From Octopus sinensis (taxonomy: Eukaryota): DNA of 64,000 nt. This document shows positions 363-58,713 of this stretch, piece after piece; the first letter of the stretch is position 1, and every line of letters starts with the position of its first letter. Location: NCBI RefSeq assembly GCF_006345805.1, contig NC_042999.1:56172001-56236000 (forward strand), written 5' to 3'. The position numbers and the translations under genes were made by a program. The notes below the pieces were generated by a model. That model was not told the origin of the DNA, did no database searches, and saw only the letters and a program-made list of their open reading frames with translations.

Positions 363-467
363 TTGGAAACATCCACTGCTAGCTGCACATGGATAATGAT
401 ATTTTTTCGTACAACGAGGAATTCTGCAAGTTATTGTTGCGCCGTATCGATGACAGTAACTGCATTT
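363..467 (-). CDS. KMT2C: KMT2C/D exon, ePHD core: KCSYCHRYGATITCRIPRCTKKYHYPCAASSGCFQ; gene continues beyond the left edge
   Basis: C-x2-C...GAT-x2-C-x4-C-x3-YHYPCA motif of KMT2 ePHD fingers. Acceptor ttttacag|aaa, donor caa|gtaagt; 105 nt, phase 0 to 0. Confidence 0.95.
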
Positions 468-2949: not shown

Positions 2950-3059
2950 CTGTGTCAAACCGGCAAAAACAGCTCTATCAACAAACTGCAAGCTATCATC
3001 ATCTCTCATTGTTACACCCTCAGACCAACATGCACAAGACTGATGACCCCATACATGTC
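2950..3059 (-). CDS. KMT2C: KMT2C/D exon, ePHD: (G)HVWGHQSCACWSEGVTMRDDDSLQFVDRAVFAGLTQ
   Basis: W-x-H-x-x-C-x-x-WS-x-GV ePHD signature. Acceptor taattcag|ga, donor cag|gtaaat; 110 nt, phase 1 to 0. Confidence 0.94.
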
Positions 3060-4488: not shown

Positions 4489-4628
4489 CTGTTATTTCAT
4501 AAACCTGATGCACATCTACATCTTCTGAATGACCAACCAAACTAAGTTCATCAACAATTGCCATGGGCCGTCCATCTTCATCGTGAATACTATGAGGATT
4601 TGGACGTCGTGGAGATTTACTTCGCTCT
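4489..4628 (-). CDS. KMT2C: KMT2C/D exon: (R)ERSKSPRRPNPHSIHDEDGRPMAIVDELSLVGHSEDVDVHQVYEIT
   Basis: DELSLVG matches the same segment of human KMT2C (recalled). Acceptor tgattgtag|a, donor aca g|gtaact; 140 nt, phase 2 to 1. Confidence 0.92.
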
Positions 4629-5141
4629 CTACAATCACAAAATTACATTGAGAGTATATATTACAGTTGTAACATTTCCATTAAATTAAAAACTTTATAA
4701 AAATGAATAGAAAAAAAAACAAAATTTTTATATAAGAAAATAGTCAGTGCTTAATAATGATTAAGTATTAACAGAGAAACAAATGTTTATACATCCTCAT
4801 AAAGGAGCATATACTTAGAACTCAATTATTAAGTAAATCATCTGTCAAAACAAAAATTTAAGTCTGTCTGAAAACTATAGGATCATGCGGTGGAGTAAGC
4901 TCCCAGTTTCTCAGATGTTTAAGCAACTAAGTTTCCTCCAGAATGGGACACCAGTCCACTGCAAGATTAAACAACCCCCTCCCCAGCCACTGCTGGAGTA
5001 CACTTTGGCTGAAGAGACTGGAGGTTGCTCAAGGAGACAACATGCCACTCAATCTGGGAATCAAGCCGATGACTTTACAAACATGAATGAGCTTAACACC
5101 CAAGCTACACCTTAAGCTTAATTTTGAACAACAGGTATTAC

Positions 5142-5357
5142 CTAGCAGGTCTAGATGGGCCTCTAGGTCTTCTCCATGTTAAGTGCTTTGGATTTCTGTC
5201 ATTTCCTTTTTCATCAATTTCTGAAGATGTTCTCCTTGCTCGCTGAAGTATCCGCTTGAAAGGATTAAATCCAGGGGTTGGGTCATATTTTGACAATATT
5301 CCTTGACCAAGTAAGCTATTTTCACCACAGTTACAAAAGGAGCATGTACGACTATTA
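5142..5357 (-). CDS. KMT2C: KMT2C/D exon, start of the ePHD pre-PHD zinc knuckle: NSRTCSFCNCGENSLLGQGILSKYDPTPGFNPFKR...RPRGPSRPA
   Basis: CSFCNCGENSLLGQG resembles human KMT2C CAFCYCGEKSSLGQG (recalled). Acceptor ttttacag|t, donor ag|gtaata; 216 nt, phase 2 to 2. Confidence 0.93.
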
Positions 5358-5767: not shown

Positions 5768-5858
5768 CTTAAAATTCCACTTGAATTCGAATCTTCAGAA
5801 AGCTGCCTATCAGAAGACTGAATAATGCTGTTATCAATAGCCTCAACACAAGGATTAT
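5768..5858 (-). CDS. KMT2C: KMT2C/D exon: (D)NPCVEAIDNSIIQSSDRQLSEDSNSSGIL
   Basis: Acceptor ttctag|at, donor ttaag|gtaatt; 91 nt, phase 1 to 2, exactly bridging the flanking exons. Confidence 0.8.
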
Positions 5859-6977
5859 CTAGAAGCATTAAGAAAAAATTATTTTTTCAATAGCTATGTA
5901 TGTTGGTGGTTAGTTTTTTTTAGACATCATCCACTCAACTGAATCTTTCTCTAGTATAGTTCCTTTATTTAAAATACATGTATGAGCAAAGATGAGAATA
6001 AAATAATAGCAACAAAAATTCTATTACAAATTGAACATATATTTTTTAAAAAAGCAGTTTCTTATAATAGTGTAGCTATTTCTATATCAAGGTGAAGAAA
6101 AATAGCAACTGTTGCTTATCATTGAATATATTAAATATATTAATTTCTTTTGACTTATTTCAATAAATCAGAATTACAGGAGAAAGTGTAAATGAATATT
6201 GTAATATCTAGGCATTTCCTGAAGACAATGTAGCATAAGTAAAATGAAACAACCACATCTGGGAATCAAAAGTAAATCATATAACATTTTATACTAGAGT
6301 AACAGGAAATAGTATTCAACAGTTCTCTTGATTCTTGGATATTAAAATATTACCAAAGTTTTAAAATTGCTGAAATGAATGTACAAATAGTGATTATCAT
6401 ATACAAGCAAGAGATGGAAACCTATACAAGAAATACATATCTAACTATTGCAGTAATTATATTTTCTGATGATAACAGTTTTCAACAATGGTTTTATCAC
6501 TAGAGAACAGCAAATCAGCAAAATAATAAATTGATATTTGTTGCCTTTTTACATATGAACTTTCTTCTGTGGCTTTTCAAGTTAAAAAAATTACTGTTGA
6601 AACAAAATTGTAAGTTCACCCAACGACAATTGAATCAAGCAGTGCTAGACAGGGGAAACTAATTATTCCAATCATTTTATTTTGCATCATATTAAGAAAG
6701 TACTTCCCACAAGACATTGATGGAGACAGCTTCAAAGGATTTGGTTGCAAATACCGTAATGTAAATATTCTGCTAAATTACTGCCTAAGTTAATGAAACC
6801 TCAAAAATAAAGCATGACTGATGACTCAAAACAATAGACCGGGGGAAAAAATAATTGGTTAATTTAAATCACTATCAACAAAAGATTAAAATTTTCAATC
6901 AAGAAATGCAATAAAAATTAATAAAACAAAACTAAATACTATTTTTCTAAACAATTAAGATCATTAATAAAAATTAC

Positions 6978-7222
6978 CTCCAGATGGTGTTTCTGATAAT
7001 TCTGTCTCAGTTGATTCATCAGCAAGGATATCATCAAGAATTGAACTTGGAATAGCTTCAGTTGTTGTAGGAATAGTAGTAGATAAACTAATAGTAGTAG
7101 AATCTTGAAGTTTGAACACGGATGCATCAACACTTTCAGTAGGTATATCCATTGCAATATCGGGACTGAAACTCTCAACAACAAGGTTATATTTGGGTTT
7201 ACGTCCAGGAGTCTTTACTCGC
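6978..7222 (-). CDS. KMT2C: KMT2C/D exon: (T)RVKTPGRKPKYNLVVESFSPDIAMDIPTE...ELSETPSG
   Basis: Acceptor ttttcag|g at 7222 (phase 2), donor gga g|gtaatt at 6978 (phase 1); 245 nt, open frame, phases match both neighbours. Confidence 0.85.
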
Positions 7223-7736
7223 CTGAAAATTATATATGTAAAAAATATACAGGAAATATCTAAACTTTGTCAGAATTTTTCAAATTATATTAACTCTTTA
7301 CATGCTTGTCATTTTATAAAATCCATATATAATTAGAGTTTTTGAATTCTAATACATTATCTAAACAAAATTGTCCATTACATATTCAAATATTACACTA
7401 TATTAGTTTTAAGACTATATCAGAAACGAAAATAAATTGACAAGTTACAGTTTTCTTTTTTCAATTCATAAATTTCTCAACAACAAATATGCATATTATT
7501 AAATTGAAATAGGGTTCAATATTTGTTGAACTCATAATACAGCATAATGATGAGTGTAGAAATAGTGAAATAACTAAAAAAAATTCTGCTAACAATTATT
7601 TTAAACAGGAAAATGAAGGGATGGATCAATCAAATCAGAAATGGCCATTATCAAATATTAAAACTATAAAATATTTTTATGTACTTTCTATTTTATTCGT
7701 TACTATTCATAAACAATTTTGAAAAGGACTACTCAC

Positions 7737-10700
7737 GTTTTTTTCTTAACTAAATGTGATGGGGTTCCAACCGATTCTTTTCTAGGCCTGCCTGGTCCTC
7801 GCTTTTGTTGACTTCCACCAAAACTTTCATTCAAGTCCCCAGCAGTACTCGACTGAGAAGAATCCACTGTTGCTGAAGACAGTAAGCCCTCAGCTTCCAA
7901 AAACATATTTGGAGAGGATTGCAATTCACTATCAGATTTATTCTGTGAGTCATCAAAATATGTATTCCTATCAACAAAACTACTTGCTTTACTTTCTTTG
8001 ACATCCATGTTCTCATCATATTTTAATTCAGCTTGTTCTGAAGAAAGTTGTTGCATTAATACTGATTGGGATTTGGGAGATGTAGTTTGTTCTAAGGAAG
8101 ATACAGAATGAGCTTGTGTAGATCTGTATGAAGAGAGGTTTTGCTCATTTGATGCCTCATTATCAGGTTCCCAATCCATTTCTTGTGACAGGGACTGTTC
8201 TGACAAAGGATGACTCGAAGAAGATTCTGAGCATTTTGGAGACTGGTCAATTTGCAATTGCCTTCTTTCCGGTTTCTGTTGCTTAGAGCTTTCAAACTCA
8301 TATTGTAATTCTTGAAATCGTTCAGTAAGAGGAATTTCTGAAACACAATGTAGATTCGAGTTTTCTGTAGAAACACTTCCTTTTGTTAATTCAGTGATAT
8401 CTGATTTTTCTCTCTGCTGCAGTAGAAGATTCTGATCAAAGTTATCCACAGATTTTGTTTCAGATTCTACTATAAATTCCTGATTCAAATGAGTATCTTT
8501 CTTTCCTAAGTCTTGTACTTCTTCATTTAATGTTAGTTCAGCTGTTAAATTCTCTGCTCCTGGGGAAGATTTTTCATTATCTGTTGATTGAACTGGCATT
8601 TCAATAGACTGAACTGAATGCAAGTCTTGTTTTGTGCTACATCCAGATACTAACTCTGATTTATTGGATATAATAAATTGTTCCTGTTCAGCTGTTTCAC
8701 TACTAGCAATTTCTGGTTTCATTTCCTGAACATGTAATTCAGATGCAGAACCTGTAATAGATTCTACATCTGATTTTTCAGAAGAAACTAAATGCAAGTT
8801 CGTGCTCACAAATGAAACAGATTGTATCTCTGATTCTTGAGTATCAACTGATTGTATTTCAGACCAAGTTGATTGTTGGGTAAGCTCAGATGCTGGAAGA
8901 GATTCAAGCTGTATCTCAACAGCTGAGACAGTTTGTACTTCAGTATCTGTAGATGATTTACTCAATGACACACTGAACTGAGGAACATTTTGTTCTGATT
9001 CAGTAACTTGATATAGTACCATCTCCTTTTCTTCTTGTGCTTCATGGAAAAATTTCCCTTCTTCAATCTGTTGATCACTCATTCCTATTGAGAGTGTTTC
9101 TGGAAGAGTTACTGATACTACATCTTGCTTAACTGTTTGGAAAGTATAAAATCGTTGATCTTGTTCAGATGTTAGTGGATGATTGCCAAGATTTTCTTCA
9201 GTAGAAACATGTGGCTCTTCAACTGATAATGCACTTTGTTGCTCAGAATCTGTTTCAGAAAAGAGGGTTTGATTTATTTCAGAATGTTGTTCCTGTTCTG
9301 GTACAGGCTGTTCGACTTTAAGATCAGATGCAGTGTGTAAAGACTGCCTTTGTTTCAATTCTGATAGAGAACTTACGTGTTGATTTTCTGTTTCACCTTG
9401 ATGTTCATTTTCTGGAAGCTGTTTCTGTACTTCTGATTTTGTACATAATTCTACAGTTTGATTGGTTTCTGACTCTGAATTTTGTTGCACAGATGACACA
9501 ATTTGCTCTTGTTGTTTTATCAACTCTGAAAGTGCTTGTGATTTTTCCTGCTGATTTTGCTCTAAAGATTCTGAAAAGGTTTGTTGATCTGATTCTATTA
9601 TATTTTGCTGCTGTGAATCAATATCAGAAATAACTGCCTGTAGTTGCTCAGTTTCTACAATTGGTTCCTTCTGATCACATTTTAACACCATTTCCTGTGA
9701 CTGCTCCATTTCTGATATCTCTGTTACTTCATAATTAGGCATAATTTCTTGTTGCAGTTGCTCATTATTAGATACCATTTCTTGCAACTGGTCATTTTCC
9801 AACAACATTGGCTGCTGCTCAACTTCTGACACTGTTACTTGCATTTGAACAGCTTCAGATGGCAATTGCTGCTGCTGTTCAACTTCGGATACTGCATGTT
9901 GCTGTTCGACTTCAGATAACAGCTGATGCTGCTCTGGTGCAGATTCAGACAAGTGTTGCTGCTTCTGTTCAACTTCAGCCATTGCCTGTTGCTGCTCAAC
10001 TTCAGACACCATTTCTTGCAGCTGCTGCTGCTTAATTCTAGATACCATCTCTTGCAACTGCATAGCTTCCGGTATTTGCTGCTGCTGAAGATCACTTACC
10101 ATCTCCTGTAAATGTTCAACTTCAGACACATCTTGCAACTGCACGGTGTCAGATATGTGCTGTTGCTGATCAACTTCAGAAGCCAGCTCTTCATGTTGCT
10201 CCTCAATTTCAGAAATTATCTCCTGTGGTTGCTGTTCAACTTGAGAAACCATTTGTTGCTCTATTTCTAGTATTACATGAGCCTGCTTCGGTTCATTCAC
10301 TATCTGCTGTTTCTTGTCACTTTCAGATATCATATGAGGCTGCTCGACTTCTGAAACTATATGCTGTGATTGCAAAATCTCATGCATCTGCTCATTAGCT
10401 TGTGATTGTTGTGATGACACAATCTGCTGGTGCACACCTTCACTCATCTGCTGTTGCTGCTCTCCTTCAGACAATACATACTGTTGTTGCTGAGGAACTT
10501 CTTCAGACAAAATCTGTTGTGGAACTTCTTCAGATAAAATCTGTTGTTGTTGTTCACCATCGCACACTATTTGTTGTAAATGAACCTCACCATCACAAAC
10601 AATCTGTTGAAACTGCTGCTCACTCTCACACACAATACTCTGCTGCTGATAACCTTGGAACCTAATTTCTTGATCAGATATTTCAGATGCAATTTCCTGT

Positions 10701-13305
10701 TGTTGCTCATCAATACATAACATCTCCTGCTGGTTGTCACTTTCAGAAACAACTGATTCAATTTCTTGTTGTTTATCTTCAGACACTTCTTGTTGCAATT
10801 CACTTTGGGACATAATTTTCACTGGTTCTCCTGAAACAATTTCCACTTGCTGTTGTTTAATATTCTCAGATAATATCTGTTCTTGGGGCATATCATCAAG
10901 CCCTACTAATTGCTGACTATTATTTTCTGATAATATTTGAGGTTGCTGTCCAGGTGTGGTAACAATTTGTTGCAACATGCTTTCCATAACAATTTCTTGC
11001 TGTTGTACAACTTGTTGCTGTTCAGCTTCAAGCACAATCTCTGGTTGCTGTTGTTCAGTTTCCAATACAGTTGGCTCAGCTTCTGATACAGTTGCATCAG
11101 CTTCTGATATATCCTGCTCTGCTGTTGAGATTTCCAATTGATCAGGTAAAATTCCCACATGCTGTTCAGATGAAGACACAATCTCTTGTTGACCTGATTT
11201 AGATATAAGTTGGGCTTTTTGATGGTGTCCAGATTCCAACAAAATTGGTTGTTGCTGAGTAAATGTAGATTCTGACACAACTTGTAGTACTTCCTCTGAT
11301 TCTGTCAGAATAGGTTGCCATTGTTCACACTTTGGCGAAGTCTTTTGTTGTTGCTCTTCTTTACATATAAACTGTGATTGTTCATCAGGTTCATAATTTT
11401 GCTGCTTTTCATCAAACTGTTGTAGCTCCTGCTCTGGTTCAGGTATGAACTGTGTTTGTTCAGGAATAAACTGCACTTGCTGTTCTTCAATATCTGGAAT
11501 AAACTGTGTCTCATGCTCTGCTTGAGGTATAAACTGCAATTGCTCATGTGAAGTTAAATGAGATGGTATCTCTTCTGATACACAGTGCAGTTGCTCTTCT
11601 GTGATAGCTGGTTGCTGTTCTTCTGATACATATTGCTCAGCTGTCCTATATTGCTCATGTTGTTCTTGCAATTCAAACTGCATGTGTTTTTCAGATGAAA
11701 ATTCTGTTGTTTGATCTCCAGACTCAAACTCATTTTGCTGATCATGAGAGGCAAATTGCACTTGCTGTTCCTCGGAAATAAACTCAACTTGCTGCTCTTC
11801 AGAGATGAACTCAACTTGCTGCTCCTCAGAAATGAACTCAACTTGCTGCTCCTCAGAAATGAACTCGACTTGCTGCTGTTCTTGTAGTTGTAAGAACTGC
11901 ACATGTTGCTCATTAGGTATTTGCACAAACTCCATTTGTGGTTCCTCAGAGATTGTCTCAAATTGCATTTGCTCTTCTTCAGATATTGACTGAATTTGTA
12001 CTTCTTGAGCTTCAGACTCTGCACCCACAAACTGAGGGACTTGTTCAGTTTCTGTGGCAAGTTGGGGTAACACTTTTGATGGAGATTGTTCTTCAGAAAC
12101 CAATGCCAACTGTACTTGCTCATCTGGCACAAAGTTCTTCTGTTGTTGCTCTGATTCAAGAACAATTGTTTCTTTCTTTGTAGATGTTTCATATTTCTTC
12201 TCTTCCTCTTGAAGTTGCTCTTTAGGTACAAATTGTTGTAGATGTATAGAATCTTGTAATGTTTGCTGCTGGATTGATTTTTGTAAAATGAATTCTGGTA
12301 GAATCTGCTGCGAATCTGAAATTTGCTGCCATTCAGCTGTACATCTATCTTGCTTGATTTCTTGTCTAGATTCTGGTGTAGAAGAAACCACATGAGTAGA
12401 TTCTGATTCAACATATTGTGGTTGTTCCGTTTCTGGGTTAATAGTCTGTTCATATTCATGATCATAATGGGAAACTTGTGTTTGTTCAAATTCTGCCACA
12501 GGTATTTGTTGCTGGTTTGAATCTGAATCAAGACTTGGTACGTGTTCTGACTCTGGTGTAACTGGCTTTGCTTCAGATGTAACCAATTGAGAATTTGTTT
12601 CTTCCTGTTGAAATTCTGTCTCACAATCTTGTTTGTTTTGTTGCATGAATGTTTGATGCAACGTATCTTGAATTTCTGACAAAGATCTATGAGAATTACC
12701 CATTTCAACATCATCCACATCTGAAACAGAATCCTGAAGTTTAACATCATGAATAGGCTGAATGTTTTGCTCCAGCTCATGTTGCAAACCAGCCTGTGAC
12801 TCTGGAGAGAAACCTGCTTTGGTGTCTGACAACACAACTTGTTGTACACCTTCTTGTTGCCCTGGTAAAAGTAGAACATCCTGTGTTTCAAACTGTTCAG
12901 TTTGCTCAATTGTTGCTGGTTGAAATAATACCTGCTCATAGCTTTGTGCTGTTGATAAATCTTGTGAAGTACTTGTTTCCTGGTTCCATAACTGACTATT
13001 TTTTGATATTTCTGGTTGTTCTTTATCTTCAAATGATTGGCATGGAAGTGGAGGAGATTGCTGAGATGTATTAGAAGGACGTGGAGAAGATACCAAACAC
13101 TCTGAAGGATTAGTTTGAGTTGAACATAATTGTTGATCTTGCTCTTCACTTGTTTGCTGGAGTACTTTACTTTCAGAATTACTCTGCAACTGTGATTGTA
13201 CGTTATCACCATCATTACTTATAGGAAGATTAGTAGTTGCAGAATCAGGTAATTCTTCAGGTTCTTGGTGTTTCTCCACCAGCTTTTCTTTTTCTATTAA
13301 TTGGG
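7737..13305 (-). CDS. KMT2C: KMT2C/D-family gene, giant internal exon: about 1,855 aa Q/E/S-rich low-complexity region ending in an AT-hook (KRGPGRPRK)
   Basis: Lies within the stop-free 1,885-codon ORF 7733..13390. Acceptor ttgttctttttgtag|cc at 13305 (phase 1); donor aaaaaac|gtgagt at 7737 (phase 2). 5,569 nt = 2+1855x3+2. Splices in frame to the ePHD exons. AT-hook at about 7778-7806 corresponds to the N-terminal RPRGRPRK of human KMT2C (recalled from memory). KMT2C versus KMT2D cannot be resolved here; invertebrates usually have one co-ortholog. Confidence 0.88.
11760..11878 (-). repeat. Coding minisatellite, 27 bp x 4.4, encoding QQVEFISEE
   Basis: Units start at 11760, 11787, 11814 and 11841. 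Confidence 0.95.
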
Positions 13306-14926
13306 CTACAAAAAGAACAAAACAATTTGCAATCAAATATATTAGTACATTTATATGACAAAAAATGGGCTGAAATAAAATAAAATGCACATTCTCTGAG
13401 AGTAGTTCATAGCACTTGCTACCAAGGTGATATAATTTGCAGGTTATTTATACATATGAGGAAGGATTGAACATTTGCTTTTGCATGTATACATAAATGT
13501 TTACATGTAAGTGTGTGTGTGAGAGAGAGAGAGAGAAATCATTATTCATCATTTAACATCTTAATACCCATCTTCCATACTAGCATGGGTTAAATGGATC
13601 AACAGGATCCAATGAGCAAGAAGACTGCAGTGAGCTTCATAGTCTACTTTGGCATAGTTTCTGCCACATTGAATTCCATCTGATCCATGTGAGCATGGAA
13701 AAGAGAAAACGATATGTTTGATATAACACAATAGTTGTAAATGAGCATCAGTGTTATACAAGCATTGTTATTCATTTCCAATCTAATGTGGAAACATGTC
13801 CAGCCGTGGGGGAAAATAATATGCATGGAAGAAAGTGAAGGTTAGTGGCTGGAAGCCATAGAAAATCTGCTTCAGCAAATTTTGCCTGAACCATACAAGT
13901 ATGAAAATGGGGATGTTAAAATAAAGATGATTATATTTTTATATGTATATCTGAGTGAGTGAGTGTGAGAGTGTGTGTGTGTATGTGTACATTGATGTGT
14001 GTGAGTACATGATGATATACATGTATATGTGCATATATAAATGTTCATATGCATATATGTAAGTACATGTGTTTTTATTTATATTGTTCATCATCACTGT
14101 TCCTTTATTTTTACATCTGTTTTTCCATGATATACAGGATAAGCAAATACATTACTAAGGCTATTTTTTTCACAGCCAAGTGCTTTTCCAGTCACTAACC
14201 CATACCTATTTTACACATACAAGATCTCATATTTCACATGTCTTCAAAGACAATGTCAGCAGACAATTTGCTGATGGGGAAAATGATAATTATGTAACTC
14301 AGCAATTTTTAGAAGTGTAAGCAAACACACAGACATACATATATGACAGGCATCTTTCAGTTTCCCTTTACTAAATCTACTCACAAAACATTGGCTAGTT
14401 TGTAGCAATAGCAGAAGACGGTCATATTATTTTTATGTGTGTTTATATAAACAAGAAGGTGTATATGTAAAACATAAGTGTAATTGTCAAATAAGAGATG
14501 AGAGCACTCAACACCAGGTTGTTAGTGTAATGTAAAATAATTAACAAGAAATGCCAAGAATCACATCATAAAATTATATCATAACAACATAATACACTCA
14601 TCAGGCATATTAAACAATCTGGATTTGTCATTATTAAACAAAAACATAAATTACTAGAACAAAAGGTCTATTCTAGTTTAGAGACAGTCCTTGATATGAC
14701 CTAGTCAATTTACAAACATCTGCAGTTACAACCATTTTACATTTCCCCACATACACATATTTTCTCTTGGCATTCATCACAGCTCAGAACTCAAATTCAG
14801 ATATTCCAATGTCTGTGCTCAAGCAATATCTTCAAGTGTTGTTAGCTCACTTTCTCCAAAGATCATTTATACTTCAGCATTCACATTGCTTATAAGCTAT
14901 TTTATAAGATCCTCAAGTTTTATTAC

Positions 14927-18434: not shown

Positions 18435-19314
18435 TCTAATCTATAAAATGAAGGCGAACATTGATACAAATTCGACTTTTATGTAAAAAGGGGCCTAAAT
18501 GGGGCTGGAAGGGAATAACTTGAAGTGAGAAATTGATTGGGAGACATTTTGGGGTGTTACAGTGGTTGCTTTGGTGTGAAAATGGGGATTTAATTGATTT
18601 TTGGGGATACTTGGGAGTCTAGATTGGACACCTTTTGCCCGATTTCAATCAAACATGGTAAAGTGGAAGTGGATTTGTAATTTAAGCGTGGAATGTGTTT
18701 GAAATTTTGAAAATTAAGGCATAATTTTTTAAGTTGAAAAAAATTTCTCATTTTTATGTATTTTTGCCTTTTATTTTTTCTGAAAAAAATTTACAGCTGC
18801 TTGTAGCCTGTGTTTAGAGCTTTCATTTGGATGGTAAATCATTGAAAAATTCCCAAAATAAGTACTATATTTAACAAAGAAATCCTTTTTTCCTTATTTT
18901 TAATCACTCAAATAGTGGCACATACAAAAGGTAAGTGTACTTTCCATTGTCACTGCCTGATATTTATGATTGATCTTTCAAAATATTTTCTTTCTCAACT
19001 TACTCAAGATCTTTTGTTTTTATAAATGGAAGAGAGATAGATATAGAGAGTAAGAGAAAGTGAGGGAGAGTCCGAGAGAAAGGAAGAGTAAGAGAGTGGG
19101 AAAGTGAGAGAGAAAGGAGAGAGAAACAAAGAGGGTGAATGTGGCGATAAGAAACAGAAAAGGAAGCAATAGAAAGTAACAACCACACCCTCACCTGTGC
19201 ATAGAGCAGATCACCTTAAGCTAGTAACTTTTACTTGTTTTGCAAACAACGCTAGGGCACTATTTTCCTATAATTTAATTTCACTTGATAGCTAGACTAC
19301 CGACACCATTCAAA

Positions 19315-19565
19315 ACGTGATCGTTACCAGCGTCACCTTACTGGCACATGAAAAACATTCGAGCGAGGTCATTGCCAGTGCCACTGGACTGGCTCCAGTG
19401 CAGGAAGCATGTAAAAGCACCTACTACATTCTCGGGATGGTTGGCATTAGGAAGGGCATCCAGATCAGATTGGAACCTGGTACAGCCATCTGGTTCACCA
19501 GTCCTCAGTCAAATCGTCCAACCCATGCTAGCATGGAAAGCAGACGTTAAACGATAATGATGATA
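19315..19565 (+). mobile_element. RTE-type 3' tail element (truncated LINE end or tail-sharing SINE); similar copies at about 1880-2085, 21000-21210, 41440-41650, 57170-57500 (minus) and 58430-58680
   Basis: Shared blocks gtggttggcattaggaagggcatccag and ccaacccatgctagcatggaaagcagacgttaaacgat(gat)n, also present at the 3' end of the 45445 LINE. Confidence 0.8.
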
Positions 19566-26195: not shown

Positions 26196-28271
26196 AAAGA
26201 CTATCATAAGAGGCAATTGTAAATTCATATGTTTGCTTTAGAAGTCAAGAAAAGTATATTTTAAGAAATAACCAAGAGGAGACACAAAGAATATATTCTA
26301 GCAGTACACACTAATCTAGTTTCGATATGCACAGTAAGAATGTTTAAACAATTCTGAGAAATAACTGTCAGTAAAATTTCATTTAAGTTTCTATCATACA
26401 GCCTTGTGAAAAAATATTTTTCATCATGTTTATTTTACAAAATGGAAATTATCAGAATTTTAATATTTTTTTTTTTAATCTTAAAATGAAAATTTAACTT
26501 ATTATATTTCAAGCAAGTAAACAATCAACACTAAAATCTCCATCATCATCATTCTACACCCACTCTTCCCATGCTTGCAAGGGTCAGATGGAATTTGTTG
26601 AGACAAGATTTATTGCCAGATGCCCACTGTTGCCAGCCCTTACATATTTCCAGAAAAGGTATTTACCCATGGCCAAACATGTTTTTCATGGAAGACTGGA
26701 AATGAACAATGTCACTTGTATAAGTGTTGCTCATTTACATCACATGATATCAAAACAAAGTTACACACACAATGGGCTTCTTTCAGTTTCCATCTACCAA
26801 ATCCACTCACAAGGCCTTAGTTGACCCAAAAGCAAGTGTCTTCCATTCAATGGGACTGAACCAAAAACCACATGGTTAGGAAGCAAGCTTTTTAAGCCAC
26901 AGTGTAATATAATATTAGAAACTAAGTTAGCTAAAAGGTAATTGTAAAAAAATATTCATACTCATCTGATCACAGCAATTTAAAATGATTCTAAAATATA
27001 TACTTTTAATCATCAACCCACCATATCATCATCATTTATCCACTTTCCATCTTGGCATATTTAGACAAGTCGTCACAGTTTGAGCTAAATTTTGTCAGGA
27101 GTAACTGCCCCACCTCTCCCCAGTGGCCAGGGATCCATGCCTCTAGTCCATTTTCATCATCATCAGCCATTTTTTCTACAGCTGAATGTCCTTCCTAACA
27201 CCAACTATTTTACAGAGTGTATTGGGTGCATTTTTCATGGCAACAGCACTAAAGAGGTTGTCAGGTTTTCAACAAGGCTAAAAAGTTTTCCCAATCTTAC
27301 GATATTTCTATACATTCACCAACCACTTTACATGACACAGCACTAAAGAGATAATTGTCTTTGCCAAGACAAGAATAATGATCCTCTCTCTGAACCCTGT
27401 ATTTCCGTCTCCGTTCATCTTTCACTTCACAAAATATACTGGATGAAATTTATAGTGGCAGCTGGTGATACACTGGGAAGTAATGTTAACTAGTAAGAGA
27501 TAGCACAATTGGATAGTTGATATGGCAATGGAAAGAAAATGAATGATGGATGAGTGATCTGAGTGGGAAGGGGCATAAGCATATGTATATGTGTGGCTTG
27601 TTTTTATATTTACACCAGTCAAAACATGTTATCTGTTCATTCATGTCTTGTAACATAGCAGTTCAGTAAAATAAGTACTAGATTTGAAATGACAGACTAA
27701 ACTTGAAGCGATGCTCCAGTATTACAAACCAATAACTAAATCCAGTAGAAGAATTCAAGCAATTTTTAAAATTTCTGTTATCTGAAGTCTTACATACTTC
27801 TTGACCATGATAAGTAAGCTCCTTGAATTTTAGGAATCATCATCAAGCACTTTTGCTAAAATAGGGTGTTAACCTTGCAGATTAACCCTCACTTTAACCA
27901 GGGGCAGACTTCCAATCATAATCATATTTTTGTGGGGGTTTTTTTTGGGGGGGGGGAGAGGCAGAGCTGTGCTTTTACAGCTAAATATAATGCCAACCCT
28001 TTTAGTCACATTCTACCAAATTTTACATTTTGTTGTTATTATGCAAAAGTGTCTCATAACTTTAAAACGCTTGTTTAGAAAACAAAAAAATAGCAAAATT
28101 CTTATACAACACATTGACAATTTTTGATATCTTGGCATTTGAAGCAGTAGGAGATACAGTAGTTTGAACAAAAGAACTGGATTAGCAAGCAAAAAGCAAA
28201 TATTGAAAAAAGTACATTTGGCCAAATTTGGACATACAACAGTTTAACATAATAGCAACAATTTGTTTATA

Positions 28272-29319: not shown

Positions 29320-29499
29320 AATTAGTTATATTCTATGTTCAATTATATCAAGAAATTAAATTGAAGTTGCTCAGTAACACCAATAACAGTTATTTTTAAT
29401 ACTTTTCTTGCCGGATTGCTTGTTTGTTTCTCTTTTTGCCATTTCTGATTTTATTTTTTATCTTCTATATAAATGAAGATATTTCCTCCATCTGGAACA

Positions 29500-30062
29500 G
29501 TCAAGGTGATGCATTAGATACAAATAATTACAGAGGTATCGAGTTGTTGGATCAGGTAATGAAAGTCATGGAGAGGGTCATAGCCCAACTAATTAGGGAG
29601 AAGGTCAGTCTAGACGAGATACAGTTTGAGTTAGTGCCAGGGAAAAGCACCACTGATGCTATATTTCTGGTAAGACAGCTGCAGGAGAAATACCTAGCCA
29701 AAGATAAACCTCTGTACCTGGCTTTCATTGACATGGAGAAAGCTTTTGACAGGGTCCCCCTCGATCCCTTATCTTGTGGTCATTGTGGAAACTAGAGATA
29801 GATGAGTGATTAGTGAGAGCTGTACAAGCCATGTACAAGGGATGCTGTCAGTAAGATGAGGGTTGGTAACGAGTACAGTGAAGAATACCAGGTAGGGGTC
29901 CACCAAGGATCAGTCATTAGCCCCCTCTTATTCATCATAGTTCTCCAGGCAATAACAGAGGAATTCAAGACAGGATACCCTGGGAGCTTCTCTATGCTGA
30001 TGACCTTGCTCTAATAGCTGAGTCACTATCTGAACTAGAGGAGAAGTTTCAGATGTGGAAAC
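29500..30062 (+). mobile_element. Internal RTE LINE reverse-transcriptase fragment, same family as 45445-47100
   Basis: NNYRGIELLDQVMKVMERV...STTDAIFLVRQLQEKY...AFIDMEKAFDRVP...GVHQGSVISPLLF...YADDLALIAES, with frameshifts. Confidence 0.9.
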
Positions 30063-37099: not shown

Positions 37100-39119
37100 C
37101 TGGATGAAGGTAAGACAACTGGCTCTAGGAAGTCTACAGCAGCCTCATCAAATCAACAGAGGAAGTTGCATTGGCTACTCTTACCAAAAAGAAGAGTAGG
37201 GGCCAGAGCAAACCTTCTAATTCCCCAAATGTCATCGAAGCCAGAAACCATCTAAAGTCTATATCACTAGCTTACCACCGTTCTCCATCCCAGTCACTGA
37301 AGATCCAACTCATAACTGCCAAGAAGAATCTTGATGAGGCTTACTTGAACGCCGAGGTCGACTTTATCAACAGCAAAATTAGCAAACTATCCAAAGAGCA
37401 CATTAGTAAAAAACACCATCTCGCCTGGAAATCCATCAAAGACCTATCAGGCAAAAATTCTGAGTCATCAATTAGAATTAAAGGGGGAGCAGCTAAGAAG
37501 CGTTTAGAAAATTGATCAACTCATTTTAAAAACCTTCTTGGGAAGAATGCCAAAATCCCTGATAACCCCACTCTTCCAAGTGTGCCTATATCAGACACAC
37601 TGGACATCAACACCTCCCCTTTTACCATATTTGAACTAACAGCAACCACTAAACAACTGAAAGCCTCGAAAGCATTTGGTCCCAACAACATCCCAGCTAT
37701 AATTTGGAAGGATGATAGATTTCACGCACTTTTGCTCAATCTTTGCAACCACACACTTTCCACTTTTGTAGCTCCAAAGATTTGGCACCAATCTCAAATC
37801 ATCCCAATACCCCAAAAAGGCGATTTATCCCTCGTCACCAATTACAGGGGTATATCTCTAATGTCAATTGCTGCAAAATTGTACAACAAACTGATTCTAA
37901 ATCGTCTCGTCCTTTTTGTTGAACCTTTGCTCCGAAAGAACCAAAATGGATTCAGACATGGGCGCTCAACGCTGAGCCAGATACTATGCCTACGCAGACT
38001 TATTGAAAAATCAAAATCATTTAATCGCGATCTTGCAATGGTGTTTGTAGACTTTTCTAAAGTGTTCGACACTGTAGATAGGTACAAGATGTTTGAAATC
38101 CTTAAGCTCTATGGGATACCAGACAAAATCATTTCTGCCATCAAGTTCCTCTACACAGATACGTCTTCAACCATCTTAACCCCTGACAGAGAAATATCAT
38201 CTTTCTCAATCAAAGCCGGAATACTGCAGGGAGACACACTCGCCCCATTTCTCTTCATCATTGTCGTTGACTATGTGCTACATATGTCAGTTGATACCAT
38301 TTCTGGCAAGGGCTTTGAAATAAAACCTAGAAGTTCCAGACACCCAGCTGAATACTTGACAGACACTGACTTTGCTGACGACATCGCTCTTATCAGTGAT
38401 TCTCTCTCCAATGCCCAGTCTCTTTTACAATCTCCCGAACAAGCCTCAAATTGTGTAGGTCTTTACCTCAATGAGGCCAAGACTGAATATATAAACAAGT
38501 GCCTGTCCAACAGTGATTGCATCATCCATACTCTCAACAATGCACCCTTAAATATGGTTTCTGATTGCAAATATCATCATCTGGAAAAGAGTTTCTAACT
38601 AGAAAGGATATGGCCTGGTCAACCTGTAATGACATGCATAAGATCTGGTCATCAAATCTAAGTAGAGACTTCAAACTTGAAATCTTCAAAGCCACAGTCA
38701 AATCAATTCTACTATATGGCTCAGAAACCTGGACGTTATCAAAGAAGCTTGAGAGGTGGTTGGATAGAACCTACACTCGCCTCCTTATGAGAGCTCAAAA
38801 TCTCTCATGGAAGTGTCATCCAACCATAATGCAAATATATGGGAAACTACCACCTGTGTCATCTCTTGTGAAAGGTAGGAGAGCCCAGTTTGCTGGACAT
38901 TGTTGTAGAGCTGAAAACGAGGCAATTTCTACTCTTCTCCTCTGGAAGCCATCTACTCGCAATACCAGAGGGCACACACTCTTCTACCCTGATGTAATCT
39001 CCAGGGATACAGGCATCCAGCAACAGGACCTCCATAATGCTATGATGGACCGTGAAGTCTGGCGTAGCATGGTAAATTCCATTGTCTCGACCACGGTCGA
39101 ACAATGATGATGATGAGAG
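37100..39119 (+). mobile_element. 5'-truncated, inactivated RTE-clade LINE (reverse transcriptase and C-terminal region)
   Basis: ORF pieces 37171-37515, 37582-38598 and 38565-39107 with YRGISLMS, QNGFR, FVDFSK-FD, GILQGDTLAP, FADDIAL and LLYGSETWT motifs; internal stop and frameshift; (tga)n tail at about 39105-39117. Confidence 0.92.
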
Positions 39120-42100
39120 ATGAGGGAATTTAAACCTAAGCTATAAATGATTTTATCATCCAATTTATAAAAATAAAGAAACATTATATTCATCTCAATT
39201 CAATTGACATGGCAATCCATGAAGACACCCACCCCTGAATTGAGAGGCTTGCTAGTAACACCTTGTTCCTTTATATACATCAGCTGCAACTTTTAACAGT
39301 GATAGAGATATGAAGTTCATCTGGACTAAAAAAGCCACTAATATTTACCATAAGTACAGTGTCAACACAATCCCCAACACTGATGAAAAAAAAAGAACAG
39401 AGTTCAGAATTTGCTTCAAGTGTAAAGTGCTTAAAATTCTCTGAGGTAATATGTGCTGCTCTGGAACTAAGAAACCAAGCTCACTTCCACAATAGAGCTC
39501 CAGCCACCTACTTTTGGGAGCTAGTCTATGTTGAAAAAGAGATGGTATCTCCACCAAAGAGGAAGAAGCATGAATAGAAGAAAGGAAATAGAGAAAAGCT
39601 AACAGATAGCATTTATGTAAATCCAAGCCTTAAATTATTTAGGCCATACACACTGTTCAAGGGATTTCAAAACATGTTTAACATTCTCCAAACTTTAGAG
39701 TTTCATAAAAATGAAGTCATCAAAAATTGCCAAAATAACGAGAATCTAAATGAGGGACTAACCATATGAATGTATGCTTAGTATCTTAGAAAGAAAAGTG
39801 AGCTGAAAAGCAAGATAAGGAATTGGGTCTCCAAAGGAACATCATGATGGAGGAGAAAGTAAATAAAAGCTATGTAGAAATACCTAAATTAATCTTGAAA
39901 AGTTTTCTAAAATAACTACTAAATAAGTATTTAAAATATTTTCTTGATAATTACAATGATGACCAGGAAATTAAAATTATTGGTTTCAAATTTTGGCACA
40001 GGGCCAACAATTTTGAGTGAGTAAGTCAATTACATCGACCCTGAAAGAATTAAAGGCGAAGTTGACCTCAGCAGAATTTGAACTTGGAACATAAAGATGG
40101 ACAAAATGCTACTAAACATTTTATGAAACATGCTAACAATTCAGCTAGTTCACTGTCTTAAAAGAAATTCAAATTATAAATTTCAAAGTTTGATACAAGG
40201 CCAGCAATTTCGTGGGAGGGAGGGAGTCAATTACATCGACCCCAGTGCTCAACTAGTACTAATTTTATCAGCTCTGAAAAGATGAAAGGCAAAGTTGATT
40301 TCAATGGAATTTGAACTCAAAAACATAAAGGCAGACGAAATGCCACTAATAATTTTGAGAAATTAAAATTATTAACAATTAATTTTATCACTGGGAAATT
40401 GGCATAACTATCTGAGGTCCAACCCATGCCAGTATGGAAAGTAGATGTTAAATGATGATGATGATGATCCAAAACCATTTTATTTTATAAGAAATATTAG
40501 AGACATGATTTGGTTTGTCTTTTTAATCAAATACATTTATTTTTACATATACCATTGAAAAATGTATGCTCTTTACACTCTTGGGTTATATAAACTCTAG
40601 AAATGTATAGTCACAAATATGAAGTGAGGATAGTTATCTTTAAAGCCAGGAAACAAAATACTGTCTTAAGACAAGATATTATTGTGCATTGAATCTAGAA
40701 TTCAAGAACTAAAAGCAAGACACACAAACATAATTTCTTGACAGTAGCAGCAACCTTCAAGGAAAAACCAAAAATAATCAGATATTAATTTTATTTGACA
40801 TGAAATTATTGCTTTTAGCTCCCCATTTATCAACCACAGCCTAAAGTGATTCAAGGTCACACCAGATTGTTGTCTACAGAAATGTTAAGACAATAAACCC
40901 ATTGAAGAGTACAATAAGACACCAGATAACAATGCAACAGATTTAGAACTGGAAATCAGCCTATCTTGACAAACATTTACAAATAAAACACCTTCCAAAA
41001 AATAATTTAAGATAATATGTTACTGTTATTTAGTTTCAAGTCAACCCAGATCAATCAAACCTATGATCAATGCAGTCCAACCATGACCATCCTGTCTTTT
41101 TCATGTATTCAGAAAAAAAAACAGGATTACATAATCCAACATCTCAAACCATCTATCACTCTCTTCTCACAATCCAACCCACACCCATCCCCAATTCTTT
41201 GTCCATGTTTTATCATATACTTACCTTCTTGTATCTTGTGAGTATGTTTTGACACCTCATCACCACCATCATTGTCTTCTTTCCAGCTACTCTCACCCAC
41301 CCATATATAATGCCAGGTAGCTAAGTATTTCCTTTTCAGAAAAATACCAGTGCCGGTCCTATCATACTTTAGCTTCTAAACACCTGGTATAAACCACCTC
41401 CCACTCTGTTACAACTCCACTCAGTTGAGAGAGTCTCTTTTTGTCTTGCAAGTTATTTTGGCTACCTCACTGCTGCAGATGTTACAAAAAAAGCACCCAG
41501 TACACTCTGTAAAGTGGTTGGCATTAGGAAGGGCATCCAACTATATACCAAGACAGACATTGGAGCTCGATACAGTCCTCCAGCTCATTGTCCAACTCAT
41601 ACCAGCATGGAAGAAATACATTAACTGATGATGATGATGATGATGATGATGATAATTACACACACATACAAAATCAAGATTCACAGTTTCACAACCACCT
41701 CTATCCCTTGTAGCTAATTTAACTCATGACCCATGCCAGCTTCTGTTAAGCCCAACATTCAAAGATCAAGCTTCACCACCTCATCCCTCATCTCCATGAA
41801 GCCCAAATTTGAAGATCATGCTCCCAGCAATGGCCACAATGTATATGTATGCATACATACACATGCACACATACATATGTAAAAATAATGGAGTCTTCTG
41901 ATTGGGCAAAATTACCAAAAAGTTCAACCTTTAAAGGCTTGTAGCTTTTATATTACTAATTTCTCAAAAGATGGATGTGATTTTTGTAAGTAGTATGTAA
42001 AACAATATCAGCATAGAAAATTTCAAAAGAATTAGTTACAACGATTTAAACAGAATAGGTCCTATTTCTTTTATATCCAGAAATCTGGTAATTGCTAATC

Positions 42101-44880: not shown

Positions 44881-45444
44881 TGCTAATTCTTACAATATCA
44901 ACAAACAGGAGAATTTTAATTTATGAAGAGAAAATGAAATAGCAAATATTTTGATACACAACCAGTGAAATTTTTCTATTGAATATTTCAAATCGATTGG
45001 CTGAATTGTCAGAGCATTGGACAAATGCTTTGTGGTAATGGTTCCAGGTCTTTATGTTTTGTGTTCACATCCTGCTGGGATCAATTTTACCTTTCATTTT
45101 CCTAATTTGCCATGGGAAAATATGTTGGTTTATAATAGTAATTTCTTTCAACAAATATTTTGCTACACAACAATAGGTATTCATCTGCAGGATAGGAATC
45201 TTCAATGAGTTTCAAATTTTCATCACAGCTCAAACAAGGCCAAAAGTAGTAATTTATTTGCTGTTAATCATGGATTTTTTTATTAACATTTTTATATACT
45301 TGGACAGTTAATAGCCATGCTTTTCTCCTGTTAACCATACATGTAATCACAAAATATTTCATAAATCCAACTGAAATAATGGAAACATCATCCTATGTAC
45401 TTTACAATATCTATTTGGCTCTACTGTTCAGGTTGCTTCTCATC

Positions 45445-47100
45445 ATCATCATCATCATCATCATCATTTAACGTCCGCTTTCCATGCTAGCATGGGTTGG
45501 ATGGTTTGACTGAGGGCTGGGAAACCAAATGGCTACACCAGGCTCCAGTCTTGATCTGGCAGAGTTTCTACAGCTGGATGCCCTTCCTAATGCCAACCAC
45601 TCCGAGAGTGTAGTGGGTGCTTTTATATGCCACCGGCATGGGGGCCAGTCAGGCAGTGCTGGCAACGACCTCGCTTGAATCTTTTTACACATACCAACGG
45701 CACAGGTGCCAGTAAGGTGATGCTGGTAACGATCCCGCTCGAATGGTGCCTCTTACAGAAGCCAGTTAGCCACTCTGACAATGATCACGCTCTGATGGTG
45801 CTCTTAGTACCCTACTAGCATGGGGCACAAGTGCCAGTAAGGCGAAGCTGGTAACGATCACACTTGAATGGTGCCTTTTATGTGCTACTGGCACAAAAGC
45901 TGGTTGGCCGCTCTGTCAATGATCACACTCGTATGGTGCTCATGCCCGTCATCGAATTTCACTTAGATTTTGATTTTGATTTCGATTTCACTTGCCTCAA
46001 CAGGTCTTCGCAAGCAGAGTTTAGTGTCCAAAGAAGGAAAATGTATGCACAAGTGGGCTGCCCCTGGCATAGGCCACGAGGTTATGGTCTCATTTGGCTT
46101 GCCGGGTCTTCTCAAGCATAGCATATTTCCAAAGGTCTCGGTCACTAGTCATTTCCTTGGTGAGGCCTAAAGTTCGAAGGTTATGCTTCACCACTTCATC
46201 CTAGGTCTTCCTGGTTCTACCTCTTCCACAGGTTCCCTCAACTGCTAGGGATTGGCACTTTTTCACACAGCTATTCTCATCCATTCTTGCTGCATGTCCA
46301 TACCAGCGCAGTCATCTCTCTTGCACACCACATCTGATGCTTCTTAGGTTCAACTTTTCTCTCAAGGTACTTACGCTCCGTCGAGTATGCACACATCCAT
46401 CGGATCATACTGGCTTCATTCCTTGTGAGCTTACGCATGACCTCATCAGTCACAGCCCATGTTTCTCTGCCATGTAGCATGGCTGTTTGTACACATGTGT
46501 CATACAGTCTACCTTTTACTCTGAGTGAGAGGCCCTTTGTCACCAGCAGAGGTAAGAGCTCTCTGAACTTTGCCCAAGCTATTCTTATTCTAGCACCTAC
46601 ACTTTCAGAGCACCCTCCCCACTACTGACTTGGTTACCCAGGTAACGGAAGCTATCAACTACTTCTAGTTTTTCTCCCTGGAATGTGGCGGAAGTTGTTC
46701 TCTGCACATTTTCAGTGTTTATTGCTCCCGAGCATCTGCCACATATGAAAACTATCTTCCCAGTTAGCCTCCCTTTGATATTACTGCACCTCTTATGTGT
46801 CCATAGCTTACACTGGGGACATCTTATAGAGTTTCTAACTACACCTCTACTACAGATCGAGCAGAGCCATCTACCTGAAGGGATTTGTGGTTTGCCTGCC
46901 TTACTACTTATTAGGGACTTTGGTTTTAGCTAGGTTGACTCTAAGGCCCTTCGATTCTAATCCTTGTTTCCACACTTGAAACCTCCTCTAGTTCTGATAG
47001 TGACTCAGCAATTAGAGCAAGGTCATCAGCATCCTGTCTTGAATTCCTCCGTTATTGCCTGGAGCACTATGATAAATAGGAGGGGGCTGAGGACTGAACC
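45445..47100 (-). mobile_element. 5'-truncated RTE-clade LINE with long 3' UTR and (gat)n tail
   Basis: Minus-strand QGSVLSPLLFIIVLQAITEEFKTG and ADDLALIAES pieces; ORF 46277-46543 (RLYDTCVQTAMLHGRETW); tail ...catggaaagcggacgttaaatgatgatg at about 45445-45490. Confidence 0.9.
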
Positions 47101-57060: not shown

Positions 57061-57686
57061 ATGCACTGAAAATTTTGACACCAAAACCTAATGTTTAAGT
57101 GAAGCTAACAGTCTTTGAATGTCTTTTATGTGTCTTCCATGCTGTAATTGTGTGTGCGAGTGGGGTCTGTATCATCATCATCATTATAATCATCACCATC
57201 AACACCGTTGTTTAATGTCTGTTTTCCACGTTGGCATGGGTTGGACGGTCTGACAGGAGTTGGCCAGTCAGAGAGCTGCACCAGGCTCCAGTTGTCTGTT
57301 TTGGCATGGTTTCTACTGTTGGATGCCCTTCCTAATGCCAACCACTTTCTACAGTGTACTTGGCCCTTTTTACATGCCACCTACACAAGTGCATTTATGT
57401 AGTGCTGGTACTAGTGCATCTTATGTGACACTGTTGCGGGTGCCTTTTATGTAGCACTGCCACCAGCAAGACAAGGATCTCTCAGCTGGGAGAGGGAGTT
57501 GGGGCATGGCCATAAAGGATATTCCTGTATGTATGGATGGCCACAATTTCTTCTCAAGTACAGCAAATTGCCACAAGCCCCAATCCCTTGTCATTTCCTC
57601 AGTGAGGAAATGACAAGGGGTTAGGGCTTTACTCAACCCTTCATCCCCTGTCTACCCATTCCACAGTTTACTTCCACAATTAGAGA

Positions 57687-58342: not shown

Positions 58343-58713
58343 CACATATCACATACTTACACATATATATACACATATCACATACTTACACATATATATA
58401 TACACATATATATGTATGTATATATACCTGTAGCACATAAAAGCACCCATTACAGTCTTAGAGTGGTTGGCATTAGGAAGGGCATCCAGCTATAGAAAAC
58501 CAAACCAAATCAGACTGGAGTCTGGTGCAGCCCCTCAGCTTAACAACACTAGTAAAACTGTCCAATCCATGCCAACATGGATAACAGACATTAAATGATG
58601 ATGATGATGATATATATATATACATCATCATCATCATTATCGTTTAACGTCTGTTTTCCATGCTAGCATGGGTTGGAATATATATATGTGTGTGTGTGTG
58701 TTTGATATATATA

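Follow-up and report, generated by a model that had tools for sequence, protein, structure and literature searches.

A putative giant exon of an octopod KMT2C/D-type gene and an overlapping reading frame kept open in two species

The locus and its KMT2C/D-type gene

The DNA analyzed here is a stretch of 64,000 nucleotides from Octopus sinensis (NCBI RefSeq assembly GCF_006345805.1, contig NC_042999.1, positions 56,172,001 to 56,236,000 of the forward strand), referred to below as the window. Its low end carries, on the minus strand, N-terminal exons of a gene of the KMT2C/D type (MLL3/4, Trr/Lpt), which encodes a histone H3K4 methyltransferase. In all animals, enzymes of this family prime enhancers; how they cluster on chromatin is now believed to be governed by their disordered regions. 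One exon of the gene, at window 13305..7737, is exceptionally large and encodes a repetitive acidic sequence ahead of an AT-hook. A second frame, shifted by +1, is open within its 5′ third, both here and in Argonauta hians. The giant exon, already pointed out in an earlier sequence-only reading of this DNA, would be of moderate interest taken alone, as a disordered region expanded in one lineage. The new element, which that reading missed, is the overlapping frame and its conservation.

The giant exon spans 5,569 nt, of which 13303..7739 form 1,855 full codons; the two extra bases at its 5′ end and the two at its 3′ end complete split codons. The open reading frame listing gives the enclosing raw minus-strand ORF as 7733..13390, 1,885 codons. 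The coding frame of the exon has no stop, and the remaining five frames have 56, 213, 72, 73 and 133. First-order Markov simulations of sequences with this composition (300 runs) gave longest ORFs of 105 codons on average and 184 at most, against 1,855 in the exon. Base composition is strongly skewed by codon position, with 6% G at position 2 and 5% C at position 3. No second copy of the exon sequence exists in the 64-kb window.

The acceptor of the giant exon reads ...ttctttttgtag followed by CCCAATTAA, and the first exon base is 13305. Its polypyrimidine tract and AG occupy 13306..13325 on the minus strand (ttgttctttttgtag followed by CC), and A. hians has ...ctttatttacag followed by CC at the homologous position, nucleotide similarity between the two species beginning at 13325. 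At the other end ...AAAAAAAC is followed by gtgagt, with 7737 as the last exon base. The GTGAGT donor (7731..7736, minus strand) contains the in-frame TGA that ends the raw ORF.

Splicing the giant exon to 7222-6978, 5858-5768, 5357-5142, 4628-4489, 3059-2950 and 467-363 gives a seven-exon model, all on the minus strand, with GT-AG at every junction, compatible phases throughout and a stop-free joined translation. The last four exons encode an extended PHD finger (ePHD). Two short linker exons stand between them and the giant exon. One, at 6978..7222 (RVKTPGRKPKYNLVVESFSPDIAMD...), is joined in phase and has 81% nucleotide identity to A. hians; the other, at 5768..5858 (DNPCVEAIDNSIIQSSDRQLSEDSNSSGIL), has 89%. 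The first ePHD exon, at 5142..5357 (CSFCNCGENSLLGQG...), aligns with A. hians and is collinear with homologues P0001-P0004. The next, at 4489..4628, encodes ERSKSPRRPNP...VDELSLVGHSEDVDVHQVYEIT and has 94% nucleotide identity to A. hians. The exons at 2950..3059 (GHVWGHQSCACWSEGV...) and 363..467 (KCSYCHRYGATITCRIPRCTKKYHYPCAASSGCFQ) match Pfam and PDB entries and also align with A. hians, and the gene runs on past the low window end. The sequence-only reading had proposed a stop-free exon of 5,569 nt at precisely these positions, with canonical and phase-compatible splice sites, joined to ePHD exons. The exon is there as described and is joined in phase; the ePHD exons are in the same gene as claimed, but the join to them is indirect, through the two linkers.

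The downstream exons match the Pfam families zf-HC5HC2H_2 (9.1e-11) and zf-HC5HC2H (1.6e-10), and their best match among solved structures in the PDB is the KMT2D ePHD (3.5e-10). A library search with the segment from AT-hook to ePHD returned, as named matches, 'histone-lysine N-methyltransferase 2C-like [Ptychodera flava]' (50% identity) and a JGI 'MLL3'. The same search found a partial A. hians protein at 91% identity, and the A. hians continuation, P0001, adds a PHD finger (PF00628) after the ePHD. The AT-hook itself, KRGPGRPRK (window 7778..7804, minus strand), lies at exon residues 1834-1842, is identical in A. hians, and recurs as RGPGRPRK near the N-terminus of homologue P0002.

The homologues have the same order as the octopod gene, namely AT-hook, basic patch, acidic/serine-rich linker and CxFCxCGE ePHD. 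This is also the N-terminal layout of human KMT2C (MLL3) and KMT2D (MLL4) and of Drosophila Lpt (Cmi) and Trr, where CxFCxCGE...GATIxC marks the ePHD and PHD fingers follow. The octopod gene thus has the N-terminal AT-hook, then ePHD and PHD, of the family, and its closest relatives are KMT2C/D orthologues. Because the AT-hook lies inside the giant exon and homologues keep the same AT-hook-to-ePHD order, these comparisons place the exon in a single KMT2C/D-type gene and not in a neighbouring one. The KMT2C/D assignment made earlier therefore agrees with the Pfam, structure and library matches. The placement of the exon N-terminal to the AT-hook holds for about 1,833 residues, but the hook itself is within the exon. 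Taken together, window 13305..7737 is likely a genuine protein-coding exon of an octopod KMT2C/D-type gene, judged from its sequence and from the comparison of two species.

The giant exon in Argonauta and its predicted product

The comparison locus was A. hians L001 (assembly GCA_054771915.1), which ends about 19 kb downstream of the giant exon. The orthologous exon lies at L001:3289-8830, with 1,846 codons and the frame intact. It begins at the same CCCAATTAAT after AG, and its acceptor and donor are positioned as in the window. The donor is GTAAGT, in the same phase, with an in-frame TAA inside it, and the following exon continues the frame. Whole-window BLASTN against L001 aligned, within the gene, the seven exons and not the introns. 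The two giant-exon products are 64% identical over 1,740 aligned residues, and all of the approximately 60 indels between the exons are in frame. About 20 short blocks are nearly invariant. Composition is conserved, as is net charge (−274 in the window, −314 in A. hians). The giant exon is thereby at least as old as the split between the window species and Argonauta.

Substitution rates were estimated by the Nei-Gojobori method (NG86). The whole giant exon gave dN of 0.20-0.22, dS of 0.81-0.89 and omega (dN/dS) of about 0.25. By parts, omega was 0.44 for the N-terminal part, 0.30 for the C-terminal part and 0.15 for the repeat core, where dS (1.14) is probably inflated by misalignment, making omega there uncertain. 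Set against the gene baseline dS of about 0.5, the omega of the giant exon is nearer 0.4, and overall its dN/dS is about 0.25-0.45. Mismatch rates at codon positions 1, 2 and 3 are 0.213, 0.137 and 0.361. The ePHD exons, 94-98% identical, have dN of 0.017, dS of about 0.5 and omega of 0.03. The first linker exon (7222-6978) has dN of 0.21, like the giant exon, and omega of 0.37. At the protein level the giant exon has diverged about 12 times as much as the neighbouring ePHD. By these rates the giant exon is clearly under purifying selection, like the gene's other disordered segment, and changes about 12 times faster than the folded domain; it evolves as a constrained disordered region.

The product of the giant exon (1,855 residues) contains 334 Q (18%), 287 E (15.5%) and 231 S (12.5%). 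D and E together make up about 19.5%, and the longest Q run is 4. Internal repeat units, split by motif anchoring, are degenerate E-Q(n)-x-hydrophobic-hydrophobic-S-E units concentrated in a repeat core at residues ~380-1260 (window 9524..12166, minus strand). The degenerate units of 9-12 amino acids noticed earlier are thus real, and this is where they cluster. At the DNA level, Tandem Repeats Finder detected arrays with periods of 21, 27, 33, 36 and 54 nt. Self-BLASTP of the product for internal repeats returned the identity match only. We suggest that the core grew by tandem duplication of units of 21-54 nt.

The 27-nt array (window 11760..11877, minus strand; 4.4 copies, 91% matches by Tandem Repeats Finder) encodes EEQQVEFIS repeats and has the same copy number in A. 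hians. Its five EEQQVE[FY]IS copies are of the F type in the window and mostly of the Y type in A. hians (L001 ~4700-4835). This suggests lineage-specific homogenization of the copies by concerted evolution or gene conversion, not simple vertical descent of each copy.

A. hians has two polyQ runs encoded by mixed CAA and CAG codons, one of 15 residues (exon residues 878-892; L001 ~5921-5965) and one of 14 (923-936; L001 ~6056-6097), and the window has Q3-Q4 at these places. From this difference, microsatellite-like expansion appears to be still active in the giant exon in one lineage.

No Pfam domain matched the product of the giant exon. In the charge-hydropathy plot of Uversky, its mean hydropathy (0.396) falls below the boundary (0.466). 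A single-sequence AlphaFold2 model of residues 381-780 is almost all coil, with a mean pLDDT of 37; single-sequence models are weak evidence for disorder. Low hydropathy with high net charge, the lack of a predicted fold, and fast evolution with many indels are all features of disordered regions, and the product is probably a very large, acidic, intrinsically disordered polyanion. The sequence-only reading had also envisaged such a domain, and the charge, hydropathy and predicted coil bear it out.

Its analogy with prion-like condensate domains fares less well. By composition, checked directly and not with a PLAAC-type predictor, the product does not fit the classical prion-like domain, which is rich in uncharged polar residues and poor in charges: although Q makes up 18%, E+D reach 19.5%, with a net charge of −274. 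The prion-like domain of human KMT2D (MLL4) comprises residues 3561-4270 and drives condensates (PMC13584762), and so does lie elsewhere in the protein, as the earlier reading had said. The octopod arm resembles it in being glutamine-rich, predicted to be intrinsically disordered and part of the same enzyme family. It differs in being N-terminal instead of in the C-terminal half, in being strongly acidic and in lacking any Q run above 4. The two are not homologous. A condensate or activation role for the octopod arm is speculation.

The product may be pictured as a flexible arm of great length, polyanionic and rich in glutamine. Hydrophobic pairs recur along it at regular spacing, with acidic residues on either side, and could form a multivalent docking surface or one similar to an activation domain. 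Tethered beside the basic AT-hook, the arm may bind it in competition with DNA. Acidic activation domains, and acidic tails beside DNA-binding modules such as that of HMGB1, have acidic residues interspersed with hydrophobic pairs. The octopod arm may be likened to an HMGB1-type tail next to a basic DNA-binding motif, a likeness to be taken as a lead only, and is an order of magnitude longer. Like vertebrate KMT2C/D, the octopod gene carries very large low-complexity regions, and those of vertebrates are encoded by very large exons.

The A. hians annotation divides the gene. A 1,852-residue 'hypothetical protein' (L001 2937-8834) opens with a first exon of 13 nt, guessed ab initio, and terminates at the in-frame stop of the donor. 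A second model, GAB1600281.1 (L001 10001-17546), is a 'partial' ePHD/PHD protein of 381 residues. We read this split of the KMT2C/D gene as an artefact. With at least one published cephalopod annotation splitting the gene at the giant exon, orthology tables and protein-length comparisons are likely wrong.

A +1 reading frame kept open in two octopods

The +1-frame ORF, a candidate second coding frame, occupies window 11554..13215 on the minus strand, the same strand as the giant exon, whose 5′ third it overlaps. It has 553 codons and a stop (1,659 nt of codons). In the homologous place in A. hians, L001:3379-5070 (+), the ORF has 563 codons (1,689 nt). In both species it starts with ATGATGG at exon nt 91-97, the first ATG in any frame of the exon. 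The last +1 stop upstream lies two codons before this start; around the second ATG, position −3 is A and position +4 is G. The ends in the two species are within about 15 codons of each other, the window stop sitting in a 5-residue insertion. Entry into the +1 frame from the exon acceptor was considered and rejected; with +1 stops at codons 1-2 and 27, the ORF must start at its own ATG. The +1 frame is thus kept open for 553 codons in the window, and 563 in Argonauta, from a conserved ATG.

The depletion of +1 stops was tested with 5,000 synonymous-codon shuffles of main-frame codons 28-582 that kept the protein and the codon usage. No +1 stop is observed, versus 10.4 expected in the window and 13.1 in A. 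hians, and the shuffles never gave fewer than 3 and 5, respectively. The depletion can be followed to individual codons. In the +1 region none of the xTA codons is followed by a purine (0/30 in the window, 0/34 in A. hians), versus 125/212 and 105/182 of the other A-ending codons. In the rest of the exon, 40/95 and 41/88 of the xTA codons are followed by a purine. There the +1 stops are not depleted, with 52 observed versus 60.6 expected in the window and 57 versus 57.7 in A. hians.

The part of the exon bearing the +1 ORF has dS of about 0.47 and dN of about 0.2. About 30 synonymous and about 250 nonsynonymous single-base changes could create a +1 stop in it, and none has been fixed in either lineage. 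In a codon-column shuffle after Chung et al. (2,000 shuffles of aligned codon columns), the jointly open +1 run of 532-552 codons compares with a shuffle median of 67 and a maximum of 190. Simulations put conserved alternative frames that arise by chance below about 500 bp (PMC1868773). By that threshold, the present frame is an alternative frame of at least 500 bp that is open in orthologues beyond chance (PMC1868773), and its initiation codon is conserved.

The predicted +1 product is extremely basic, with 99 K+R and 4 D+E (net charge about +95), and rich in L, K, S and N; the main-frame product of the same nucleotides is acidic. No Pfam domain and no PDB match was found for it. AlphaFold2 models it with low confidence (mean pLDDT 44), with long helices in the first 220 residues.

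If the +1 frame is translated, by leaky scanning of the same mRNA or from a transcript of its own, it would yield a strongly basic protein, about 553 residues long, with the potential for electrostatic pairing with the acidic product of the main frame. Such a protein could bind the polyanionic arm encoded by the same nucleotides and neutralize or regulate it. The nearest known parallel is the GNAS XL exon, where a single transcript is read in overlapping frames to give XLalphas and ALEX, proteins that interact with one another (PMC1186735). The octopod exon is likewise a large, repeat-rich, lineage-specific N-terminal extension. In both, too, a +1-frame ORF of considerable length opens a short distance downstream of the main start, and its openness is preserved in orthologues (PMC1186735, PMC1868773). 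Unlike GNAS XL, the octopod +1 ORF is longer (1.66 kb), belongs to another gene family and phylum, and is known here from sequence alone.

Were the +1 frame translated, it would be among the longest conserved dual-coding regions known in an animal nuclear gene, and would give a master enhancer regulator the invertebrate equivalent of XLalphas/ALEX. The same DNA would then spell out one acidic and one basic protein, and the origin of new proteins by overprinting would become directly testable.

Distribution, alternative readings and neighbouring elements

Outside the octopods, two intron-less, transcript-like contigs have only about 33 and about 66 residues before the AT-hook, and in both an in-frame stop lies a few codons upstream of the ATG. 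In human KMT2C the AT-hook is at residues 34-46 (UniProt Q8NEZ4), with about 33 residues ahead of it. The octopod AT-hook has about 1,833 residues upstream of it in the exon, compared with 30-70 from the start codon in other animals. A further difference is that the octopod AT-hook sits in an exon reached by splicing at an acceptor, not in the first coding exon. By this comparison two octopod lineages have the extension and at least some other animals lack it. The short N-terminus that the sequence-only reading ascribed to KMT2C is thus also seen in the two contigs. Its further claim, that this lineage evolved the domain independently, goes as far as presence in the two octopods and absence from the two contigs, but is established no further. 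The octopod arm offers a natural experiment, in which a conserved chromatin enzyme would have gained a large new interaction surface.

Wider searches with the exon returned nothing. Word-index protein searches, with the whole exon and with its less repetitive C-terminal 600 residues plus the ePHD exons, each gave at least 8,000 low-complexity candidates and no significant match. An exhaustive phmmer search of the last 1,200 residues against 1.84 billion representatives gave no match, and the A. hians orthologue is not in that collection, as an exact look-up confirmed; in a local phmmer run this orthologue scores 1e-251. Since the searches missed even the A. hians orthologue, their negatives carry no weight on absence in molluscs. 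A JGI metagenome scan with the two-species exon alignment found nothing, and neither the raw ORF product, nor the product starting at Met201, nor that of the +1 ORF gave a contig in exact look-ups. Among the library matches to the conserved ePHD query, there was no KMT2C/D protein of the genus Octopus. No paper on cephalopod KMT2C or on cephalopod Q-rich expansions was found in the literature.

The giant exon opens at its acceptor in phase 1. Its first in-frame ATG is codon 201, and it is conserved as coding from the first codon. For these reasons at least one upstream exon must supply the start codon, and translation would begin there.

Several observations weigh against parts of the interpretation given here. 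The window covers the gene only to the first ePHD; the HMG box, FYRN/FYRC and C-terminal SET/post-SET domain that also mark the family, with the rest of the enzyme, would fall beyond its low end. No start-codon exon could be located, and in A. hians the 3.3 kb that precede the giant exon contain no conserved block. The junctions of the giant exon, and the translation of either frame, are predicted from sequence.

Against the exon being coding at all, one might argue that its frame is open by chance, in intronic DNA of low complexity or of transposon origin, or that it is a pseudo-exon in decay. Q/E-rich DNA of low complexity does lower stops in some frames, and the introns are full of retroelement fragments. 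This reading is refuted by the simulations, with their maximum of 184 codons against 1,855, and by the A. hians comparison, in which an intact orthologue has about 60 in-frame indels and dN below dS, and the exon aligns while the flanking introns do not. The absence of another copy in the window also speaks against it, and we give it practically no credence. The exon might instead be a gene in its own right, never spliced to the KMT2C/D exons, whose acidic product of about 1,850 residues would stand alone and terminate shortly beyond the AT-hook, at the in-frame stop of the donor site. The A. hians annotation treats it in this way, with a separate partial ePHD product, and an unspliced transcript would terminate cleanly in both species at the in-frame stop in the donor hexamer. 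Any GTRAGT donor in this phase, however, contains a stop simply by virtue of its consensus. The two species share the position and phase of the donor GT, the next exon continues the frame, and the AT-hook and basic patch at the exon end are collinear with KMT2C-like N-termini that precede the same ePHD. Moreover, of the two annotated models one begins with the 13-nt guess and the other is flagged 'partial'. We regard a separate gene as improbable. If the giant exon is accepted as part of the KMT2C/D-type gene, its age may be questioned, as it could be an older molluscan or lophotrochozoan feature missed by the searches and not an octopod or cephalopod innovation. The uninformative search negatives leave room for this. 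Against it, the two independent transcript-like contigs and human KMT2C have short N-termini, and a region only 64% identical between two octopods evolves so fast that homology could hardly survive at great depth. An older origin seems rather unlikely, although less so than a separate gene.

The more serious contest concerns the +1 frame, which may be open and yet untranslated, through an unmodelled constraint such as codon-pair or RNA-level preferences of the 5′ third, or by historical accident. The +1 product is less conserved between the species (58% identity) than the main-frame product (71%), and substitutions over the +1 region follow the main-frame pattern (0.185, 0.121 and 0.306 at codon positions 1, 2 and 3). 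From these two facts, the openness of the +1 frame, and not its sequence, is what is demonstrably conserved. The product also has neither homologues nor domains, and its predicted fold is of low confidence. On the other hand, the depletion is specific to the three stop trinucleotides, with xTA plus purine at 0/30 and 0/34 versus about 58% for other A-ending codons. It is confined to the stretch between the conserved ATG and the roughly conserved end and is absent from the rest of the exon. The openness has also persisted in two lineages at dS of about 0.5, despite about 280 possible stop-creating changes. An untranslated frame is a real possibility on this evidence. We tentatively propose that the 5′ third of the giant exon might be dual-coding, with the basic protein made from the same mRNA or from an internal transcript and its frame open since before the Octopus-type and Argonauta lineages parted; dual coding is a well-supported candidate, not a demonstrated fact.

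The upstream 50 kb of the window is rich in retroelement fragments. A remnant of a LINE-type retrotransposon at window 37171-39107 (+), probably in an upstream intron of the gene, has an RVT_1 ORF (9e-28) followed by a DUF6451 ORF. Another piece of reverse transcriptase lies at 29424-29795 (+; RVT_1, 1e-11). The ORF at 46600-46929 (−) has a weak PHD-like zinc finger (4e-5, just below the Pfam cut-off). It was considered as an upstream part of the gene and rejected, as it belongs to a retroelement-like fragment. A Tc3-type transposase helix-turn-helix is found at 58976-59362 (−; 1e-6). ARAGORN detected no tRNA anywhere in these 64 kb.

The window also carries an interspersed, SINE-like repeat, about 200-300 bp long, with at least eight copies distributed over both strands at 70-93% identity. 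The copies are at window 45400-45750, 19304-19564, 58424-58677, 57178-57381, 41489-41655, 40418-40468, 27173-27248 and 2037-2080. Pieces of the repeat match L001 near 23.9 kb and at 25.5-27.2 kb, and the family is therefore shared with Argonauta.

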